The notes beneath the pieces were generated by a model that was not told where the DNA came from, made no database searches, and was given only the letters and a program-made list of their open reading frames with translations. From NCBI GenBank assembly GCA_964036045.1, contig OZ038378.1, positions 173,414,001 through 173,478,000 of the forward strand: 64,000 bases of DNA, in the 5' to 3' direction. The translations under genes and the position numbers were made by a program. Source of the DNA: Eutreptiella sp. 'Long Island Sound 2002'. Lineage: Eukaryota; Protista; Euglenida. Below, one piece after another: positions 42,269 through 53,159 of this stretch (position 1 is the stretch's first letter; every line of letters starts with the position of its first letter).

Positions 42269-43413
42269 TTTAAAAATGGGTTAACAGCCCGTTTTTTTTT
42301 GGTAAAAAAACGGGTTGTCCGTCCCCAGCCACACAACCCGTTTTTTTACCAAAAAAAAACGGGTTGTCTCTAGACAGCCCGTTTTTTTACCAACAAAAAA
42401 CGGGCTGTCTCTTGACAGCCCGTTTTTTTACCAACAAAAAACGGGTTGTGACCTTCTTTTAGCGCCAGGGGGTTGCCAAAATAGGGCACTTTAAATTTTT
42501 CCATTTTTCAACCAAAAAAAAACCGTTTTGGGTGTGTGGATGCCACATGATGATGTCATCAAGGCTCCCAAAGGAAAAGGAGTAACATCAATAGGAGGTT
42601 GACTTGTGGATGTTCCTCACGTGCCCGAACAGGTAGCCCCCATTGCACTTGTGGCAGATTCGAGCCCTGGAAAGGTTAGTGTGACCTCCTCGCAACAATC
42701 GGCTTGTGACGAGTGAAGGCTCGTTGCTTGCTTTGTGAACCCATTGATGCCGGCCTTGAGCTGGTTGCTGAGGATCTCTTTGTGCAACAACAGAATGCAC
42801 CATCACCTCCATCTGCGCCTATTTCAACTCCGATTGATGTTGCACAACCGGGAGGTGGTGAGGAGAGGGATGAGAGTAGGAGTGGCGAGGAAGAAGAGGA
42901 GTTTGAGGCGGAGAGGATCATTGGTAAGAAAGTTCATCGTGGCAAGCCATTGTACTTGGTGCGATGGAAGGGTTGTGGGAAAGAAGATGACTCTCTTGTT
43001 GCTTTGGTCAAGCCGGACTCAGAAATGGGGGTGGGTCTCTTAAATGGTCATTTGGTGGTGGGTCTACTGCATTTGAGTTTGTATATCATTCTCTTGCTTT
43101 GCTTCTTCTCAAAGGGTGCTTTGCTAGGCAAGGGGGACCCACACCGGACACTTGGGGGGTTCATACAAGGTGGATCGTCTTGGTACCCCGGCGTTGGCCG
43201 GTTGGAGTTTGTATATCATTCTCTTGCTTTGCTTCTTCTCAAAGGGTGCTTTGCTAGGCAAGGGGGACCCACACCGGGCACTTGGGTGGTTCATACAATT
43301 AAAGGTCTGGACAACCCGTTTTTTTACCAAAAAAAAACGGGCTGTCCCCCGGCGTTGGCCGGACAACCCGTTTTTTTACCAAAAAAAAACGGGCTGTAAA
43401 ACCCATTTTTAAA
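42269..43413. mobile_element. Non-autonomous TIR element with repeated hairpin motif, carrying a chromodomain fragment
   Basis: tttaaaaatgggttaacagcccgt(t)nggtaaaaaaacgggttgtcc at 42269 is inverted at ~43360-43413. The internal palindromic unit ACA(A/G)CCCGT(T)nACC(A)nCGGG(T/C)TGT is repeated about six times. Confidence 0.7.
42896..43000 (+). pseudogene. Truncated chromodomain (HP1/CBX-like)
   Basis: EEEEEFEAERIIGKKVHRGKPLYLVRWKGCGKEDDS matches the chromodomain consensus (YEVEKI..KR...GK..YLVKWKGY..EDNTWEP). The final TWEP is missing. Confidence 0.8.
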
Positions 43414-43414
43414 A

Positions 43415-43520
43415 AAAACGGGCTATTAACCCGTTTTTTTACCGAAAAAAAACGGGCTGTCAGCTTCGCTGACTACAGCCCGTTTTTTTTCGGTAAAAAA
43501 ACGGGTTAATAGCCCGTTTT
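43415..43520. repeat. Near-perfect ~105-bp palindrome (foldback MITE-like)
   Basis: aaaacgggctattaacccgttttttaccgaaaaaaaacgggctgtcagc-ttc-gctgac(ta)cagcccgttttttttcggtaaaaaaacgggttaatagcccgtttt. Confidence 0.9.
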
Positions 43521-44646
43521 CCTTATAAAACGTATTAGATGGAGGTGAGTTGGAGACGGTAGTTGTTAGATGAATCTCGCGGTCCATCTAACATTTATCG
43601 GCTTGCAAACAGCTGCCATTGTGATGGCAAGTGTGCAGTTGCCATTGTTATGGCAAGTGTGTTAGTATCGCCATAGCCCAAATCATGGCGGTAATCCCAA
43701 ACCGCAAACTTGCGCAAGCGGGGGCTTACCCTGCATACCACGAATGAATGCATGAACCCCCGAGAGCCCGACAATCTCTGCGGAGGTTGTCAAATTAGTT
43801 ACGAGGCGCAAATATTAGCTCACGTCAACAACACTGTGGGCAGTGCAGGCGTGCTTTCTGTGCTGTAAGGTGGGCACATTGTGCAGGTCAAGCAACAGCC
43901 TGGGACTCAGAGATCCCTGAACCATCGGGTGTTCTGCACAAACTGCATCACTCCTGGGTAGAACATCAGTAAAGTGACACTGACAACGAAAGTCATCAAA
44001 GGTTCACTTCCAAACCTTCCAAACCTGTGGCTGGTCGCCTTCCTAGCAAGCATGGGCATATGGCAGCAAACATACAGGGCCACATTCAGAACGGCAATAC
44101 GGTCAGAGCATATTCCTTTGGCTACCAGACCGGACGGAGGACCGGTCTGGTCTTGTGGGGAAAATTATCACTTTCTGGCAAAGGATTGGGTCAAGGGTTT
44201 TTGAACGTGGCGGAAATGATGGTTTTGGTGGTTTTCTTAGACTCAATAGTATTTTAGAGAAAAACAGTAAGACCAGTTTCAGAGACCGGTGGGACCGGTC
44301 TTTGCAAACCGAACGGACCGGACCACTTCGGTACACTTTGGAGCACTTTGTTACACTTGCCTCCCAAACCTACCTTTGCGCGCTCGTTGCAGCATGCACG
44401 CCACCACACACCATGCACAAACCACACACACATACACAGACTTTGCTTCCCATGTCCTCTTGGGTGTTTCAACGATGCATGATGGGTGGGATGCACCATT
44501 AGCATGAAAATAGATCGGTTCAAACAGTTTCATGCAGACCGGTCAGACCGGTCTTCCGAACCTCGCTCCTGGTCCCCTACTTCCTGCTGCCTTTTGACAG
44601 GACCGGTCAGACCGCTCTTCCCCGCTTTGTTGCTTAGCCTTTTTCA

Positions 44647-47044
44647 ATGCCGATTTCAGGCCCCGGGACGAAGATCCCCGGCGTGAAGGACGCCGAGACC
44701 CCCGTGCCCACGGCCTTCAAAAAGGTCCGGGCCGGGGATCGGGTGGTGCTGCTCCTCAAGGGCTCGCACGGGGGCCGCTACACCGGCACGTGCCAGTCGC
44801 AGGCGACCGGTAAAATGTCCCTGTCCGGGACAATCTACTTCACGGAGGACCAGAAGACCGGGGGCTTGAAGCGCAGCATCAGCAAGGGCGAGCTTGACTT
44901 CGTCACCGAGGACGTGCTCGGATGTTGGGTGGTCGCGGAGGCGAAGACATCTACTCCGGGCCAGAGGATTGCGGCCCGAGCAGCGCAGTCCCGCAAAAGG
45001 AAAGTGAACGAGGAGTCCGAAGACGAAGACGAGGACGAGGAAGAAGAGGACGAAGAAGACGAGGAGGAGGAGGAGCGAGAAAGCGTGATGGAGATCCCGG
45101 AAGAAGAGGCAAAGGAGGAAGAGCAAGAGAGGAAGAAGAAGAAGCCGGCGAAGGAGAAGCACACCACCAAAAGACGGTTGCCGGACCCATTTTTCAAGGA
45201 AATCAAAGCCGAGGGCAGTGAGTCCGCCTCGGCGCCCCGCACAAGCAAGAAAGGCAGGAAGGCCTCCACCGAGGACGAAGAGAGGTCGGCGGAAGAGGTG
45301 CGCATGGGCAACGCGTTGGAGATGTATGGCACCACCTTGCCAAGGCTTGGGCAACACGTCCGGCAATGTCTCCGTGGCCAACCCGGCACCAAGACACTTC
45401 TGGCGGCAGCGCTGCAGTTGCTGTTCGAGTGCCCGAACAGCATTCTTCGTGGTCCTCTCTGCATTCGGTCGGATTACATCGTGGCGCAGCGCAAGTGTGT
45501 CGAGCCCCTTCGTCAATCCGGTGGTCCCCAATACGAAGAATACGCAGGTTTGTGCATACTGTCGTAAACCGTTAGGACCGCTTCACTTTAGCACACTTCA
45601 CACGACGACCGGTCGGACCGGTCTGTACAAACTGTCGTAAACCGTTCGGACCGGTCCACTTTAGCACACTTCATACGAAGACCGGTCGGACCGGTCCTTG
45701 CAAACTGTCGTAAACCGTTCGGACCGCTTCACTTTAGCACACTTTAGCACACTTTATTCCATTTCTCCACAGAGAAGGTCTTGCAGGGGGCTGCAACGTG
45801 TCCGAAGTGCTTGGGGATCAAGGATGAGCCCGACATGGACATGCCCGCCCTGCCCGCCGCGCCCGCAGCGCGCCAGCTCGCCATCCCCCAACCCGCCGCA
45901 AGGCCCGTCCCTCCGGAGATGCCGATGCACGTGCAGACCATGGACCAGCTCACCACTCCCCAGCTGCGCGAGAAGTTCATGGCCCTCAAACGGGAATTGC
46001 AACGCACCGAATTCGAGCTCGTAACGGTATGGAGCACCCAATGGCCGTTCGGGGTTGTGTGTGGAACTCGCTCTCCCCTTTGCCGTGCCATTTTTAGGTC
46101 CGTGGGGGTTCTCTTCCTACAAGTGATTGGCATGAACCACACGCCGAAACCAAGACGTTGGGGGAGCAGATCGAAGAGATGCGGACAGTCGCTTGGTTCC
46201 GTGAACAAACGGAGAGGATGAGGTTCGCCGAGGAAGAAGAGGCGCGCGAGGAGTTTGAACGACAAGAGGAGGCAAGAATCCAAGCCGAACGTGCAATGGA
46301 GGTGTGTGTCCAGGGGTCCCCTAGCCTACATTTGTGCATGCATGGAGTCAGCACTGTGGTCTGTGGTCTGCAGGACGCCCGACGTCGTGAGGAGGCCGCG
46401 CGTGAACGCGAAAAGAAGGATGCGGCGACCGAGGCTTTGGAGGCGAAGTTGAAGGCGTTGCAAGAGGAGTTGGACAAGGCACGGAAGAGCAAGGAGGAGC
46501 CGAGCAAAGAGAAAGAACCCGGAGAACCAGACCCGCAGCAGGTCCCAGCGGAGGAGGCAGGCGCAGGGGAGCCGATCGCCCAGCAAGCCGATGCCCCCAA
46601 GCCAGAAGCCGGAACTCAGGCATGCGTGTGCTTCAATTCGTTTTAAAGTGTGCTAAAGTGTGCTAAAGTGGACCGGTCCGAACGGTTTAGAGTAGTTTGC
46701 AAAGACCGGTCCGACCGGTCTTCGTGTGAAGTGTGCTAAAGTGTACCGGTCCGAACGGTTTACGACAGTTTGCAAAGACCGGTCCGACCGGTCCTTGAAC
46801 GAAGTGTCACGAAGTGTACCGGTCCGTTCGGTTGAAACCACTTTACTTCCTTTTTCTGCAGGAGCCCTCCACCCAGGCACTTCAGCTGCAGGCGGCTTCC
46901 GCTGCTGCTGCTACCGCGATTCCGGGGATGAAAATCACCCCGGCCTTCGCCGCACAAGAGGCGCGACTCGCGCTGCAGCTCGAGGCCCGCAACAAGAAGA
47001 CCGGGGAAGAGAAGAAGGATAATGAGGATAATGAGGATGAGTAA
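44647..47044 (+). CDS. Accessory spliced gene of the piggyBac-like element, ~595 aa (beta-rich N-domain, acidic/basic tract, Cys cluster, coiled coil)
   Basis: Exons 44647-45547, 45773-46026, 46098-46301, 46374-46619, 46862-47044. Phases 1,0,0,0. The last intron is GC-AG. Intron 3 is in-frame and may be retained. No premature stops. Confidence 0.7.
45555..45760. repeat. ~75-bp GACCGGTC-rich subterminal-type repeats (forward orientation) in intron 1 of the accessory gene
   Basis: Unit caaactgtcgtaaaccgttcggaccggtccactttagcacacttcacacgaagaccggtcggaccggtc, ~2.5 copies. Confidence 0.9.
46645..46830. repeat. Same ~75-bp repeats in reverse orientation, in intron 4
   Basis: aaagtggaccggtccgaacggtttagagtagtttgcaaagaccggtccgaccggtc units. 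Confidence 0.9.
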
Positions 47045-47244
47045 CTCATTTTCTATTTGCTTTTGCTATTTGCTATTCCCTTTTGATTTTATCGACGAAC
47101 TGTTTCGGTCCTGTGTGGCCGGTGAGCCAGACGTGTGCCAGACGTGTGCCAGACATGTGCTTGATGGGACACCAGCGACATGATTCCAGGATTGCATGAT
47201 TCCATGATTTCTGCTGCGTGTTTGGTTTGGGAGCAAAGAAAGTC

Positions 47245-47650
47245 TGAAGTGTGCTAAAGTGTGCTAAAGTGAAGCGGTCCGAACGTTTTAGAGTAGTTTG
47301 CAAAGACCGGTCCGACCGGTCTCTGGACAAAGTGATCTAAAGTGGACCGGTCCGAACGGTTTAGAGTAGTTTGCAAAGACCGGTCCGACCGGCCCTGGAC
47401 AAAGTGATCTAAAGTGAAGCGGTCTGAACGGTTTAGGGTAGTTTGCCGGTTTGGGAGCAAAGAAAGTCTAAAGTGTACTAAAGTGTGCTAAAGTGAAGCG
47501 GTCCGAACGGTTTAGAGTAGTTTGCAAAGACCGGTCCGACCGGTCTCTGGACAAAGTGAGCTAAAGTGGACCGGTCCGAACGGTTTAGAGTAGTTTGCAA
47601 AGACCGGTCCGACCGGTCTCTGGACAAAGTGATCTAAAGTGAAGCGGTCT
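47245..47650. repeat. Array of ~5 reverse-orientation ~75-bp repeats upstream of the transposase exon
   Basis: aaagtg(a/g)(a/c)cggtccgaacggtttagagtagtttgcaaagaccggtccgaccggtctctggacaaagtgatct units. Confidence 0.92.
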
Positions 47651-47663
47651 GGTCAGCAAAAGC

Positions 47664-47685
47664 TTGTATTCTGTTTTTTTTTCAG
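47664..47685 (+). promoter_or_regulatory. Strong 3' splice acceptor (cis or spliced-leader trans) just upstream of the transposase ATG
   Basis: ttgtattctgtttttttttcag|gcATG. Confidence 0.65.
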
Positions 47686-47687
47686 GC

Positions 47688-49049
47688 ATGCCTGCGGCTA
47701 CACCATGGGAACCAAGACCCCTGGCCCCCCTAGAGGCCCAATGGGATTTTGGAGATGAACTCCGCAAAGGGCGCAGCCTCTTGGAGGGCACCGAGGATGG
47801 CAAGACCCCCGTTGCCGTCTGGAACTTTATGTTTCGGCCAATTTTGGAGGCCATGACGCTGTGTTTGGAAGAGGCCAACCGGTTAGACCTTGTGGACCTT
47901 CTTCCGCGGTACGTGCTCTTTCGAGTTGGCTTGGGCATGCTGCAGCCGCGCAGAATAGATGATGTGTGGGACAAAGAGAGTATGCACTACAATGCATACA
48001 TGGCGGAACTGTTTCCCAGCAGGCGACAGTTTTATGTGCTGCAGCGACTTGCGGATCCGGATGCGGATGCGTTGATTGAGTTGTGCACGATGCACTGGCA
48101 AGGCGGATGGGAACTAGGTGACGTGGTGTGCGGGGATGAGACCGTGGTCCCCCACAAGGGGTTGTTTGTCATCCGGCAGTTCATACCGCGCAAGCCTCAC
48201 CCCACCGGTGTGAAACTGTACGCGTTGTGCGACGCACAAAGCCATTACATTTGGCATGTGTATTTGTACCGTGGTGCAGCCCCTCGTGTGGGTCCGGAGT
48301 CCCGGAGCCGGTTTGCAGGACACTACAATGCGTTTGAGATTGTGCAACTTTGGAATGATGTGACTCCACCCGGAAAGGTGCTTGTGGCGGATTCATTCTT
48401 TGGGTCTCATGATGCGGCGGCGATGCTAAGTGCACAAGAGCGTCCGTTCTTGATGCTCACTTCCACAAGTGCTTTGGTGCAAGATGGGAACGTTGGACTA
48501 GACCCGGGGGATGTGAACACGGTGGTGCACAAGGAACATCGGTATGCACTCTCGGTATACAAAAACCCCAAAGTGGGGCGCAAGCCGGCAAAGGTGGTAC
48601 CACTACTAACCAATTGCCTAACCGGAGGTTCGCTCCCACACCGAAGTGGACGATACCACCTACCGGGGATAATTGCCAACTACCGTAGGTTTGCCCCGGG
48701 GGTGGATACGTTTAACCAAATGTGCTTACAACACCGGGAAGAGCACCGGTTTCAATCATGGTGGAAGGCACTTGGGGGGATGGTGTTAAGGATAGCGGCA
48801 ACAAATGCATTTACGTCATGCCAAGCGTTGCGTCTTAGTCCGGGGGGTGAAACAATGTTTGACTGGCAATGGAGGTTGATGAGATACATGTTTCCGGCAA
48901 GGCAAATTCAGGTGGTGGACAAGCATGTACCAATAGTGGTTGGGAAGCGGGGCTTTTGTGTACATTGTGGGATGGGCACCACCCGATACAAGTGCAAAGC
49001 ATGTGGGTGCTATCTACACGTTGAATGCTTTGCGGACCATCATGAATGA
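47688..49049 (+). CDS. piggyBac-family DDD transposase (DDE_Tnp_1_7-like) with C-terminal Cys-rich domain, 453 aa from the first ATG
   Basis: VCGDETVVPHKG...RQFIPRKPHPTGVKLYALCD, VLVADSFFGS, YRRFAPGVDTFNQ, WWKAL...AATNAF, and RGFCVHC...TRYKCKACGCYLHVECFADHH. All three catalytic Asp are present. No stops. Confidence 0.95.
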   Translation: MPAATPWEPRPLAPLEAQWDFGDELRKGRSLLEGTEDGKTPVAVWNFMFRPILEAMTLCLEEANRLDLVDLLPRYVLFRVGLGMLQPRRIDDVWDKESMHYNAYMAELFPSRRQFYVLQRLADPDADALIELCTMHWQGGWELGDVVCGDETVVPHKGLFVIRQFIPRKPHPTGVKLYALCDAQSHYIWHVYLYRGAAPRVGPESRSRFAGHYNAFEIVQLWNDVTPPGKVLVADSFFGSHDAAAMLSAQERPFLMLTSTSALVQDGNVGLDPGDVNTVVHKEHRYALSVYKNPKVGRKPAKVVPLLTNCLTGGSLPHRSGRYHLPGIIANYRRFAPGVDTFNQMCLQHREEHRFQSWWKALGGMVLRIAATNAFTSCQALRLSPGGETMFDWQWRLMRYMFPARQIQVVDKHVPIVVGKRGFCVHCGMGTTRYKCKACGCYLHVECFADHHE

Positions 49050-50231
49050 ACCATGAATACATGTCTTGTGAGGATTGACTCCCATGCATTGCAATGCCTG
49101 TGCAAAGGTGTGAACACGCACAACACAGCACACGCACACACACAACACACACATGCGGACACACACACTACACACGCATCACCAAGTGCTCCAAAGTGTG
49201 CTAAAGTGTGCTAAAATGGTCCGGTCCGTTCAGTTTGCAAAGACCGGTCGGACCGGTCTGACCGGTCTCCCCGAACTAACCGGTTCGCTACAGAAAGCTA
49301 AAGTGGCGCGAAACGGTCTCAACTGAACAGTTGGTGATTTTGCCTAGTCGAAACGGTGAGTTAACGAAGACCGGTGGACCGGTTGTGAAAATATTCGCGT
49401 ATGGTAGCCAAAGGAATATGCACAGGCAATCCCCATTTATCCAAATCGTTTCTGAGGTTAGGCACCCACCATCGTTTGGGGTATGTTTTTTCCTGCAGGT
49501 CGCTGATCACCAGATGTATATTCGCTGTCGCATCTGCTGCAGTATCCCAGGTAGCCACAGTTTTTGGCCATGGCTGGCACCAGAGACTGCAGCGCACGTG
49601 AGGCTTTTGGCGCAAACTATCGGGAAACGGACCAGTTTTTGGTGCGGTGCTGTAAACTTTGAGCTCTTATCTGCCAGATGCGATGACCAGCGGTGAGTTG
49701 TCTGAGGCCTGGGTCACTTCTATCTCCCCGTGCAGGGTAATCCAAGTGTCAGCGACTCCCTCACGCTGCAGCTCCAGGTTATACACACCTCCTAACCATG
49801 TCTCTAAATGCTCAAATGAGCATCGGCCCAAGGCAAATGATTGCATGCCCTTGGAGTATAATGCTGTAAATATTTCAATGGATTTTGCAGAAATACATGT
49901 CCCGCCTCTGGCACACATTCTGCAAGACACTGTGCGCGTCTAGCAACACTGTGTGTGTGGCGGGGGTTGGCATAATTCCCTTGTTGCGTTTGGGGGGCTG
50001 AAATCTAGTTGAAATCTGGAGAATGCTTCTTGGCCTTCTGTGTTACTTACGTGCGGTTTCTCTCGCTGAATCCGCCTGTATCTTGAACATTCCTGAACCT
50101 GTTCGCCCTTTGCCTTTCCCGTTTTGCCTTCGTCTGTTGTCACGCATTCTGCACGAATCACTGCACCCACAATCAGAACATTGCACACCCCATGCCTGCA
50201 AAAACCATGCACAAGTCCTGCACCATTTCCT

Positions 50232-50253
50232 CCATTTGTCTGCCTGTTTGCAG
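50232..50253 (+). promoter_or_regulatory. Probable spliced-leader trans-splice acceptor 11 nt upstream of the ATG
   Basis: ccatttgtctgcctgtttgcag|taaattccacgATG. Confidence 0.5.
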
Positions 50254-50264
50254 TAAATTCCACG

Positions 50265-53159
50265 ATGGTGCAAATCTCTTCCGATGGTTCTTCTTACTTC
50301 GGATATTCGACGCTGGAGGGGGACCAATCTCATTCCCAGGAACAGACCCAACAGAAGCATTGGAAGGCATCGGTGGCTTGTGGCCTCGTGATGGCCCTCG
50401 GCATGACGTTATTTGTCGCAAGCCCCCCCCAATCTGCCTCTGAGTTCTTTGGCATGGGCACGAAGGTACTGTCCGGGACCCGTGCTCCCAGAGCCCTCGA
50501 GCGACCCCGCTCCTCAGGGCTGCCTCAGAATGGCCACCAGCGTTCCCGGACGTCTCTAGCATCGGTCGATGCCGCAGCAGCTGTGGGTGCTTCGGTCACT
50601 GCTGCAGCGACGGCAAAGGCTGCGGGCAGTGGCACTGCAGTGCTGTTGTTGGCCCCACAGCTGCAGCTGGCGCTTCTTGCTGGGGCGGTGGTGGCGATTT
50701 GTTTTGGGGTGGGGTTCTTCTCTGGCATCTTGGCACGGTGCAAGGGAGAGCCCAAACGTCTCAAGGAAGAGAGCTCAGCGCAGATGATCCCACGATTGGA
50801 TTCGGCACGGAGCACTGTACTAGAGCAGGTGGAGGCAATGTCGGCGGTGACAGCTGTGGAACCCGACTCAGAAGAGACAGCCTCACAGGCAGCAGCTACC
50901 GCAAAGAATGCAGAGGCTATTCAGAAGGGAGGGAAGCAGCAGGAATTCCGTGAGAAGATAGCACTGAAAGCTCCTACGGATATCCTGCGAACTGCAGAGG
51001 AGGCTGCCCGGAAGGCAGCAGAGAAGGCAAGGGGGGAAGAGGAGGCACGTGTGGCAGCAGCCAAGAAGTGGCAGCAATTTGAGGAGGAGGCAGCGAAGAA
51101 GGCTGCAGAAGAGGAGGCTGCGTGGAAGGCAGCAGAGGAGCAGGTAGCACGGAAGGCAAAGGAGGAAGAGGAGGCACGTGTGGCAGCAGCCAAGAAGTGG
51201 CAGCAATTTGAGGAGGAGGCAGCGAAGAAGGCTGCAGAAGAGGAGGCTGCCTGGAAGGCAGAAGAGGAGCAGGTAGCACGGAAGGCAAAGGAGGAACAGG
51301 AGGCACGTGTGGCAGCAGCCAAGAAGTGGCAGCAATTTGAGGAGGAGGCAGCGAAGAAGGCTGCAGAAGAGGAGCGTGCCCGGAAGGCGGCACAGGAGCA
51401 GGTAGCACGAAAAGCAAAGGAGGAAGAGGAGGCACGTGTGGCAGCAGCCAAGAGGTGGCAGCAATTTGAGGAGGAGGCAGCGAAGAAGGCTGCAGAAGAG
51501 GAGCGTGCCTGGAAGGCGGCACAGGAGCAGGCAGCACGGAAAGCAAAGGCGGAAGACCAGGCACGTGTGGCAGCAGCCAAGAAGTGGCAGCATTTTGAGG
51601 AGGAGGCAGCGAAGAAGGCTGCAGGAGAGGAGCGTGCCCGGAAGGCTGCAGAAGAGGAGCAGGTAGCACGGAAGGCAAAGGAGGAAGAGGAGGCACGTGT
51701 GGCAGCAGCCAACAAGTGGCAGCAATTTGAGGAGGAGGCAGCGAAGAAGGCTGCAGAAGAGGAGGCTGCGTGGAAGGCAGCAGAGGAGCAGGCAGCACGG
51801 AAGGCAAAGGGGGAAGACCAGGCACGTGTGGCAGCAGCCAAGAAGTGGCAGCAATTTGAGGAGGAGGCAGCGAAGAAGGCTGCAGAAGAGGAGGCTGCGC
51901 GGAATGCTGCGCATCAGGCCGCAGCGATGAAGGCTGCAGCAGAGTTGGCTTCCCGGAAGGCTGCAGAAGAGGAGCGTGCCCGGACGGCAGCAGAGGAGCA
52001 GGCAGCACGGAAGGCAAAGGGGGAAGAGGAGGTACATGTGGCAGCAGCCCAGGAGCAGCAGTTCCGTGAGACGGTGAAAGCAGAACTCCAGGCTTTTAAG
52101 AACGCTGCGATCTGGCAGACCTTTGAGGAGAAGGCAGCGAAGAAGGCTGCAGAAGAGGAGGCTGCTTGGAAGGCAGCAGAGGAGGCAATTGAGGAAGAGG
52201 AGGCACGTGTGGCAGCAGCCAAGAGGTGGCAGAAGCTTGAGGAGGAGGCAGCGAAGAAGGCTGCAGAAGAGGAGGGTGCCCGGAAGGCAGCAGAGGCGCG
52301 TATGGCAGCAGCCATGAAGTGGCAGAAATTTGAGGAGAAGGCAGCGAAGAGTGCTGCAGAAAAGGAGGCTGCGTGGAAGGCAGCAGAGGAGCAGGCAGCA
52401 CGCAAGGCAAAGAAGCAAGAGGAGGCACGTGTGGCAGCAGCCAGGAAGCAGCAGGAGTTCCGTGAGAAGACAATCGCAGCACTGCAGGCAGCAAAGGAGG
52501 AAGCCGAAGCCCGTGAGCAGGCAGCCAGAAAGCGGAAGGTGCAGGAGGCAAGAGAGAGACTCGCGGCAAGTGAAGCTGCAGTGGAGGCTGCTGCGAAGAA
52601 GAAGGCTGCAGAGGACGCGGACGCCCGCCGTCGACTGGTAGTTGTTGCTGGCGGTGCTGCTGCTGCTGCGACGGTAGTGGCCCAGGGCATTCAAGTATCC
52701 GGTGCTTCCAACCCTCGGCAGCCAGCCGCACTCTACCAGCAACCCTCGCAACCCTTGACGGCCTCGCGCTACACCCCTTCTTCGGCTGCATTTCCCCAGT
52801 ACACTGCACCCCCATTGCAGACCCAATATCCATCCGGTGCACCTTCGTACACCTCCAATGGGGCTTCACTGGGTTTCTACAACCCCACCACGCCAAGAGC
52901 TGTGGGCTACAACCCCACCACGCCAAGAACTGCCGGGCACAACCCCACCACTCCAAGAACTGTGGGCTACAACCCCACCACGCCAAGAGCTGTGGGCTAC
53001 GAGCCCACCACTCCAAGAACTGCCGGGTACAACCCCACCACTCCAAGAACTGTGGGCTACAACCCCACCACGCCAAGAGCTGTGGGCTACAATCCCACCA
53101 CTCCAAGAACTGCCGGGTACAACCCCACCACGCCAAGAACTGTGGGCTATCCTTATTGA
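50265..53159 (+). CDS. Intronless 964-aa putative plastid-targeted protein: euglenid class I leader, 43-aa A/E/K coiled-coil repeats, second hydrophobic segment, nine YNPTTPR decapeptides
   Basis: Leader: TM1 (ASVACGLVMALGMTLFVA), Ser/Arg-rich transit-like region, TM2 (LALLAGAVVAICFGVGFFSGILA) plus basic stop-transfer, then AMSAVTA. The 129-bp repeat unit is EEEARVAAAKKWQQFEEEAAKKAAEEEAAWKAAEEQVARKAKE. The best start is the ATG at 50265, not the ORF-track start at 50124. Confidence 0.8.
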   Translation: MVQISSDGSSYFGYSTLEGDQSHSQEQTQQKHWKASVACGLVMALGMTLFVASPPQSASEFFGMGTKVLSGTRAPRALERPRSSGLPQNGHQRSRTSLASVDAAAAVGASVTAAATAKAAGSGTAVLLLAPQLQLALLAGAVVAICFGVGFFSGILARCKGEPKRLKEESSAQMIPRLDSARSTVLEQVEAMSAVTAVEPDSEETASQAAATAKNAEAIQKGGKQQEFREKIALKAPTDILRTAEEAARKAAEKARGEEEARVAAAKKWQQFEEEAAKKAAEEEAAWKAAEEQVARKAKEEEEARVAAAKKWQQFEEEAAKKAAEEEAAWKAEEEQVARKAKEEQEARVAAAKKWQQFEEEAAKKAAEEERARKAAQEQVARKAKEEEEARVAAAKRWQQFEEEAAKKAAEEERAWKAAQEQAARKAKAEDQARVAAAKKWQHFEEEAAKKAAGEERARKAAEEEQVARKAKEEEEARVAAANKWQQFEEEAAKKAAEEEAAWKAAEEQAARKAKGEDQARVAAAKKWQQFEEEAAKKAAEEEAARNAAHQAAAMKAAAELASRKAAEEERARTAAEEQAARKAKGEEEVHVAAAQEQQFRETVKAELQAFKNAAIWQTFEEKAAKKAAEEEAAWKAAEEAIEEEEARVAAAKRWQKLEEEAAKKAAEEEGARKAAEARMAAAMKWQKFEEKAAKSAAEKEAAWKAAEEQAARKAKKQEEARVAAARKQQEFREKTIAALQAAKEEAEAREQAARKRKVQEARERLAASEAAVEAAAKKKAAEDADARRRLVVVAGGAAAAATVVAQGIQVSGASNPRQPAALYQQPSQPLTASRYTPSSAAFPQYTAPPLQTQYPSGAPSYTSNGASLGFYNPTTPRAVGYNPTTPRTAGHNPTTPRTVGYNPTTPRAVGYEPTTPRTAGYNPTTPRTVGYNPTTPRAVGYNPTTPRTAGYNPTTPRTVGYPY
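52878..53147 (+). repeat. Coding minisatellite, 9 x 30 bp with 90-bp higher-order period
   Basis: Units YNPTTPR+AVG/TAG/TVG cycle three times. Confidence 0.95.

Follow-up and report, generated by a model that had tools for sequence, protein, structure and literature searches.

The window analysed here, a stretch of 64,000 nucleotides (nt) from the genome of the euglenid Eutreptiella sp. 'Long Island Sound 2002' (contig OZ038378.1), carries at positions 44110-49419 what its sequence marks as one intact 5.3-kb element, a recently active member of a young, many-copy family of cut-and-paste DNA transposons. The element has an upstream five-exon gene, called here the accessory gene, and a downstream transposase gene of piggyBac type, and it is flanked by a duplicated ATAT target. 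A preliminary description of this DNA had proposed that the two proteins share accessory exon 1, which would be spliced either to the remaining accessory exons or directly to the transposase. The two-protein part of this proposal was borne out, the accessory exons being intact in other copies and in a diverged family, but the shared exon was not. We consider it probable that the element contains two separate coding units, that the transposase is translated from its own ATG, and that the fit in frame between exon 1 and the transposase is coincidental.

The splice sites on which the shared exon was based are present in the sequence. Exon 1 (44647-45547) could be read as 901 nt from the ATG at 44647, ending in phase 1 (...TAC GCA G, then GT), and it joins in frame to exon 2, which starts at 45773 (G joined to AG AAG) after the AG at 45771-72. 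The accessory protein that follows from this join has GT..AG borders throughout and a length of ~597 amino acids (aa) rather than the ~595 first given. The same donor also joins in frame, and without a stop codon, to the AG at 47684-85, which follows a T-rich tract and is followed by GC ATG. This acceptor is indeed strong, and the exon that it would open starts at 47686, not at 47685. The last G of exon 1 and the GC would form a glycine codon directly before the transposase Met at 47688, and the fused transposase would have the proposed length of 754 aa (300 + 1 + 453). As one donor and one acceptor agree in phase with a probability of 1/3, the match in frame is by itself no better than chance.

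If the two exons were joined, the phases of the exon-1 donor and of the transposase acceptor should stay compatible as families diverge. In the window's family, a phase-1 donor faces a phase-1 acceptor located 2 nt ahead of the ATG, and the two are in frame. In the closest sister family (L064, L066 and L068; 66% identical in the transposase and ~40% in exon 1), the donor was again in phase 1 (..A G or S G, then gt), but the acceptor, preceded by a strong pyrimidine tract and separated from the ATG by a 10-nt leader, was in phase 2 and out of frame. For the two more distant families, L065 (43%) and L067 (39%), the upstream open reading frames (ORFs) were used as positional analogues only: L065 combined a phase-1 donor with a 10-nt leader and a phase-2 acceptor, and L067 a phase-1 donor with a 12-nt leader and a phase-0 acceptor, both out of frame, and in L067 the acceptor's own TAG is an in-frame stop codon. 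Only one of the four families thus fits, as chance predicts, and the frame fit is probably due to chance; on these sequences, a coincidence of one family is the most likely explanation. The gene found upstream in L064 was ruled out as the sister family's accessory gene, since L064 lacks the left end and L066 and L068 show the true left half.

The transposase ORF, as described earlier, lacks a long acidic N-terminus: its residue 147 pairs with residue 265 of T. ni piggyBac at the start of the alignment. The first ~116 residues of the T. ni enzyme are disordered and dispensable for catalysis. The 30 database relatives of the transposase measured 263-498 aa (421-498 aa for those of full length), none being near 754 aa, and relatives from other samples, of 421-475 aa, had no N-terminal extension. 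In seven of the eight aligned relatives, among them three from unrelated environmental or other samples, a Met was found 2-6 residues ahead of the first conserved motif, W/F-E-P-R. Because the relatives are equally short and the position of the start Met is kept across the clade, the short N-terminus is, judged from these alignments, native to the clade and not a sign of a missing exon; both observations argue against a shared exon.

Searches for the products gave a similar picture. No protein near 754 aa or 597 aa was found in large protein collections (5.8 billion clusters, in the length range searched), the accessory protein being searched exon by exon. Neither protein had a transcript-derived source, both large protein searches returning genome-assembly sources only. 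Relatives of exon 1 reached at most 378 aa, from a genome assembly only, and none in the representative search exceeded 315 aa. The 378-aa sequence (P0016, ENA assembly), which matched both queries, is one genomic ORF made of a piece of exon 1 fused with a piece of the transposase; it is a product of internal deletion, not of splicing. A genome-wide pattern search for junctions in retrocopies found none between exon 1 and the transposase, between exon 1 and exon 2, or between a spliced-leader end and the transposase, the last of these results being weak. The lack of a fused product in the protein collections and of its junction in retrocopies is weak evidence.

Several features place the transposase in the piggyBac superfamily. 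It matched the Pfam family DDE_Tnp_1_7 (PF13843) with an E-value of 1e-21 and 78 bits (cut-off 22.4) over profile positions 112-349, and its residues D150, D235, and D340 aligned to D268, D346, and D447 of T. ni piggyBac (chain 6x67_C), this DDD triad being invariant in the eight aligned relatives. C424, C427, C436, C439, C447, and H452 were also invariant; this C-terminal cluster gave only a weak Pfam match (C1_1), and its sequence agrees with the cysteine-rich domain of piggyBac enzymes. By sequence, the enzyme is complete and belongs to the superfamily.

The element is nevertheless a non-canonical piggyBac, with an ATAT target and ends that begin with T. Its span was defined by comparing the region by BLAST with 20 further loci in this genome, and the same 13-nt inverted repeat with ATAT on both sides was found in 19 of 19 copies. 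The duplication is of 4 bp, as in piggyBac, but reads ATAT and not TTAA, also in the three other families; the length of the inverted ends agrees with the 12-19 bp of piggyBac, but ATAT is followed by T (TCC...) where piggyBac ends have an initial C. The flanks of the window copy belong to an older repeat and are contiguous around a single 4-nt site at three paralogous places, which shows that the 4-bp ATAT was duplicated by the element. Near-identical ends terminate the elements at L065, L067, and L068. In a survey of 157 piggyBac-like elements, non-TTAA sites were rare single copies attributed to mutation (PMC5381638), and a full-text literature search found no paper on piggyBac-like elements in Euglena.

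The family is abundant. In the 2.28-Gb genome, the transposase has at least 94 matches, many of them 99-100% identical, and exon 1 has 131; many of the copies derive from others by internal deletion. The older dispersed repeat in which the window copy is nested occupies 43850-44109 and 49420-49700, and its paralogues on C1, C2, and C23 are ~78% identical. Two of the 19 copies (L037 and L040) have inserted immediately next to the end of an older and diverged copy, whose ATAT they share, which hints at a preference for the family's own flanks.

The accessory gene was analyzed in an alignment of 15 full-length sequences from two assemblies, some of which represent the same locus. The six coding pieces were open in 14 of the 15 sequences, the exception being L044, in which exon 2 is broken. 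Exon indels were multiples of three (+6 or +9 in exons 2, 4, and 5), and two sequences had a 195-nt deletion in exon 3. The splice dinucleotides were retained, except for an AA acceptor at intron 3 in two sequences. The phase is 0 after exon 2, and the exon-4 donor, GT at 46626, is a putative one, as a GC donor at 46620 is also in phase. A possible acceptor AG lies at 44636-37, 9 nt ahead of the accessory ATG. Variable sites at codon positions 1/2/3 numbered 10/4/21 in exon 1, a third-position bias also seen in the transposase (6/2/25), but 13/8/8 in exons 2-5 taken together. The copy at L050 (83-92% identical) was dropped as a test of selection, being decayed, with mutated acceptors and start codon.

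Relatives of exon 1, 28-86% identical, all came from assemblies of this species. In the sister family (L066/L068), exon 1 was found with an E-value of 1e-42 together with recognisable exons 2, 3, and 5, and an equivalent of exon 2 was also present at L065 and L068. No Pfam family matched any accessory exon or homologue. The exon-1 product comprises an N-terminal small beta-barrel, an acidic/basic stretch, and a helical domain. In a structure model built from the 15-sequence alignment and confident for residues 10-100 only (pLDDT 82-92), these residues form a six-stranded barrel resembling Sm/LSm proteins (Foldseek E ~1e-4, target TM-score up to 0.78), and the remainder was modelled as low-confidence helices and disorder. 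At L066 (10373-11137), the accessory gene is followed by unrelated sequence and the transposase is absent within 8 kb; this locus may be a transposase-less derivative or a rearranged copy.

The repeats reported in the element were also confirmed: the motif GACCGGTC is strongly enriched, occurring 28 times in the window, where 0.78 would be expected, and 27 of the 28 fall in the element's non-coding sequence. It forms part of 73-nt units, of which one lies near each end, three in intron 1, three in intron 4, and six before the transposase. The units of intron 4 and those before the transposase share one orientation, opposite to that of intron 1, and the last array ends 14 nt short of the acceptor. 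The arrangement of the arrays recurs in L065 and L067 with unrelated motifs: GACCGGTC is found in the window's and the 66% families, L065 has a TGTCTGCGG/ATACGG unit, and L067 has one of GGCTGCA..TGCAGCC, while the inverted ends are nearly identical across all four families. A new observation drawn from these sequences is a short repeat motif particular to each family, found in the subterminal regions, in intron 1, and ahead of the transposase. Conserved ends accompany a conserved transposase, and family-specific repeats a fast-evolving accessory protein, a pattern that suggests the accessory protein as the reader of the repeats. From this co-variation only, it is most likely that a protein encoded by the element, probably the accessory protein, binds the repeats.

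The arrays also bear on the shared exon, in which the choice of the exon-1 donor between exon 2 and the acceptor near 47685 would regulate transposition, the 754-aa transposase gaining an Sm-like and acidic N-terminus. The inverted arrays begin at the donor and end just before the acceptor, and the intron-1 and pre-transposase arrays were predicted to pair with -311 kcal/mol, compared to -152 for a shuffled partner, the outermost pairs joining 45544-49 with 47690-95; for the intron-1 and intron-4 arrays, the prediction was -328 against -152 kcal/mol. In such a model, the arrays of the window's family would form an RNA switch, the pairing of intron 1 with either of the other arrays setting the donor by the distant acceptor, and some transcripts would encode a fusion of the Sm-like and acidic region to the transposase. 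If true, regulation of a transposase by splicing would have arisen recently within a piggyBac lineage, in a single family. The in-frame join without a stop, the strong T-rich tract, and the third-position bias shared by exon 1 and the transposase but absent from exons 2-5 are in favor of a shared exon, and CSB-PGBD3 provides a precedent, in which a piggyBac ORF with an upstream acceptor is spliced in frame to foreign exons (PMC5381638). Considering the loss of frame in the closest sister family and the other families, the in-frame stop of L067, the start Met and length of the relatives, and the absence of a fused product or retrocopy junction, we regard the shared exon as unlikely, and the RNA switch modelled on it as equally doubtful.

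Pairing near both ends of an excised stretch could join donor and acceptor in the non-conventional and intermediate introns of euglenids, as might be the case here. Unlike those introns, the ones described here have GT..AG borders, and the 73-nt arrays span up to 2.1 kb with whole exons between them.

Slightly less probable still is that the arrays act mainly as RNA, their pairing in a read-through pre-mRNA giving rise either to long double-stranded RNA and silencing of the family by small RNAs, or to the skipping of exons 2-4. The arms, of 190 and 181 nt, are 85-87% complementary and form large predicted duplexes, and the inverted or palindromic arrangement recurs in L065 and L067 with unrelated motifs. 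However, the same motifs occur in subterminal DNA beside the inverted ends, outside the likely transcripts, which fits protein-binding sites, and the reading frame would be lost if exon 1 were joined to exon 5. That the upstream gene was captured from the host and travels as a passenger, with no role in transposition, is very improbable. In favor of a passenger, it has no Pfam domain, its exons 2-5 show no third-position bias among young copies, and at L066 it lacks a transposase within 8 kb; against it, all exon-1 matches in the genome and in databases are element copies, the gene is retained with the transposase in families only 66% identical in the latter, the position of intron 1 is conserved, and the indels preserve the frame.

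In the reading that we prefer, the accessory gene (44647-47044) would encode a protein of ~597 aa with an Sm-like barrel, an acidic/basic disordered stretch, a helical domain, a CxxC motif, and a charged coiled-coil-like tail, and translation of the downstream DDD transposase (47688-49049) would begin at an ATG of its own, which is conserved. The strong acceptor 2 nt ahead of this ATG most likely takes a spliced leader, added to a read-through transcript or to one begun in the spacer. Euglena uses spliced-leader trans-splicing in addition to conventional and non-conventional cis-splicing (PMC6366073), and a spliced-leader acceptor is therefore the simplest reading of the AG at 47684-85. The accessory protein would probably bind the family-specific repeats and the transposase recognise the conserved inverted ends. 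Several points weigh against two separate units. In the window's family, exon 1 and the transposase do join in frame at a strong acceptor, and the predicted ~190-bp pairing of the intron-1 and pre-transposase arrays reaches both splice sites and could favor the fused join. A weak AG located 48 nt ahead of the ATG in L065 would be phase-1 compatible. Evidence that exon 1 is homologous to the ORFs upstream in L065 and L067 is weak (hhalign E 0.006) or absent, so that the 66% family is the only firm comparison. Finally, extensive polycistronic transcription is thought unlikely in Euglena (PMC6366073).

Table 1. Features of the element at 44110-49419 of the window, with the evidence for each.
Feature	Position	Strand	Evidence
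Left target-site duplication, ATAT	44110-44113	+	ATAT at both ends in all 19 copies; three empty paralogous sites
Left terminal inverted repeat, 13 nt, begins TCC	44114-44126	+	Inverted copy of 49403-49415 without mismatch
5' subterminal region with GACCGGTC motifs and one repeat unit (44283-44359)	44127-44646	+	Repeat search, motif count
Accessory exon 1, 300 codons + 1 nt, phase 1 end	44647-45547	+	Open in >60 copies
Intron 1, filled by three 73-nt units whose orientation is opposite to that of the downstream arrays	45548-45772	+	Repeat family D10; inverted pairs I1, I2
Accessory exon 2, CxxC motif	45773-46026	+	Borders in 15 full-length sequences; tblastn match in L066
Accessory exon 3	46098-46301	+	15-sequence alignment; sister-family match
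Accessory exon 4, coiled-coil-like, charged	46374-46625	+	15-sequence alignment
Intron 4, three 73-nt units oriented opposite to intron 1	46626-46861	+	I1: 190 nt, 87% complementary to 45567-45756
Accessory exon 5, stop TAA at 47042-44	46862-47044	+	15-sequence alignment; sister-family match
Spacer: ~180 nt unique, six 73-nt units (47224-47671), T-rich tract, acceptor AG 47684-85	47045-47685	+	Sequence, repeat search
Single-exon piggyBac-type transposase, 453 aa, DDD triad and C-terminal Cys/His cluster	47688-49049	+	Pfam, alignment
3' subterminal region with one repeat unit (49183-49259) and GACCGGTC motifs	49050-49402	+	Inverted-repeat pair I9
Right terminal inverted repeat	49403-49415	+	Same 13-nt end in copies
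Right target-site duplication, ATAT	49416-49419	+	19 copies; empty paralogous sites

The element was compared with known systems. It resembles T. ni piggyBac and the piggyBac-like elements (PMC5381638) in the DDE_Tnp_1_7 domain, the DDD triad, the C-terminal Cys/His cluster, and the short inverted ends, and like canonical piggyBac it has a 4-bp palindromic target duplication, which would allow seamless excision. It differs from canonical piggyBac in its ATAT target in all four families seen, in ends that begin with T instead of the conserved C, in the lack of the acidic N-terminal region, and in having a second, spliced gene and family-specific repeat arrays deep inside the element. With CSB-PGBD3, a domesticated human piggyBac in a host intron, it shares an acceptor directly 5' of an intact piggyBac ORF and in frame with an upstream exon; as a sequence feature only, the AG at 47684-85 with its 2-nt leader and the phase-1 donor at 45547 correspond to that arrangement. 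In CSB-PGBD3, however, the alternative splicing is documented and joins a host gene to a domesticated copy that is immobile, whereas here both partners lie inside a mobile element, the join is predicted from sequence, and the frame match is not conserved between families.

As in En/Spm (CACTA), with its TnpA and TnpD, and in PIF/Harbinger elements, a cut-and-paste transposase is accompanied by a second protein and by multiple short subterminal repeats distinct from the ends, and the proposed division of labour, in which the repeats would be bound by the accessory protein and the ends by the transposase, would resemble both. Unlike in these systems, the transposase belongs to an unrelated superfamily, and the order is accessory gene then transposase, not transposase ORFs within the first intron. 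The ends (TCCTTTGG...) and the 4-bp rather than 3-bp duplication set the element apart from CACTA transposons, and a Pfam search found no Myb/SANT or TnpA similarity in the accessory protein, whose N-terminus models as an Sm-like barrel, which sets it apart from PIF/Harbinger.

Several observations were made on relatives outside the window and on its neighbouring sequences. A 459-aa relative of the transposase (42% identity) nearly fills the 1464-nt Logan contig SRR21705885_611345, which ends in CCCTTAA/CCTTAA repeats, like a telomere-capped mini-chromosome. The arrangement described above is found in part in two environmental relatives: one (L062) has a tandem array of a 33-nt repeat at 1-130, ahead of its transposase, and the tail of another (L063) has a right end resembling the euglenid inverted repeat, followed by ATAT-like bases. 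A metagenome scan with the transposase of the L065 family found no relative, and one member of the L065-family cluster is recorded in Logan. Just upstream of the element, at 42270-43545, arrays of a ~41-52-nt unit built on a palindrome (CCGTTTTTTT-ACC-AAAAAAAAACGG) flank a 228-aa ORF (42713-43399), the L052 counterpart of which has a weak chromodomain match; this region resembles a further mobile element rich in repeats. A 1011-aa ORF (50124-53159) directly downstream of the transposon contains ~15 copies of a charged AAKKWQQFEEEAAKKAAEEE-type repeat and ends in a tail of NPTTPR(T/A)(V/A)GY repeats.

For the splice switch, the outcome of this analysis is negative, the frame match being probably due to chance. 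On the sequences compared, the two proteins are most likely made separately, and a minor fused isoform may be possible in the window's family alone. PiggyBac is a major tool of genome engineering and is regarded as a one-protein, TTAA-specific system. The lineage described here, natural and apparently active, departs from that picture in three ways: by its ATAT target, by a constant second conserved gene, and by conserved ends combined with family-specific internal arrays. It offers a test of how target choice is set in piggyBac enzymes, and it may also exemplify a helper protein by which each family is given its own address.

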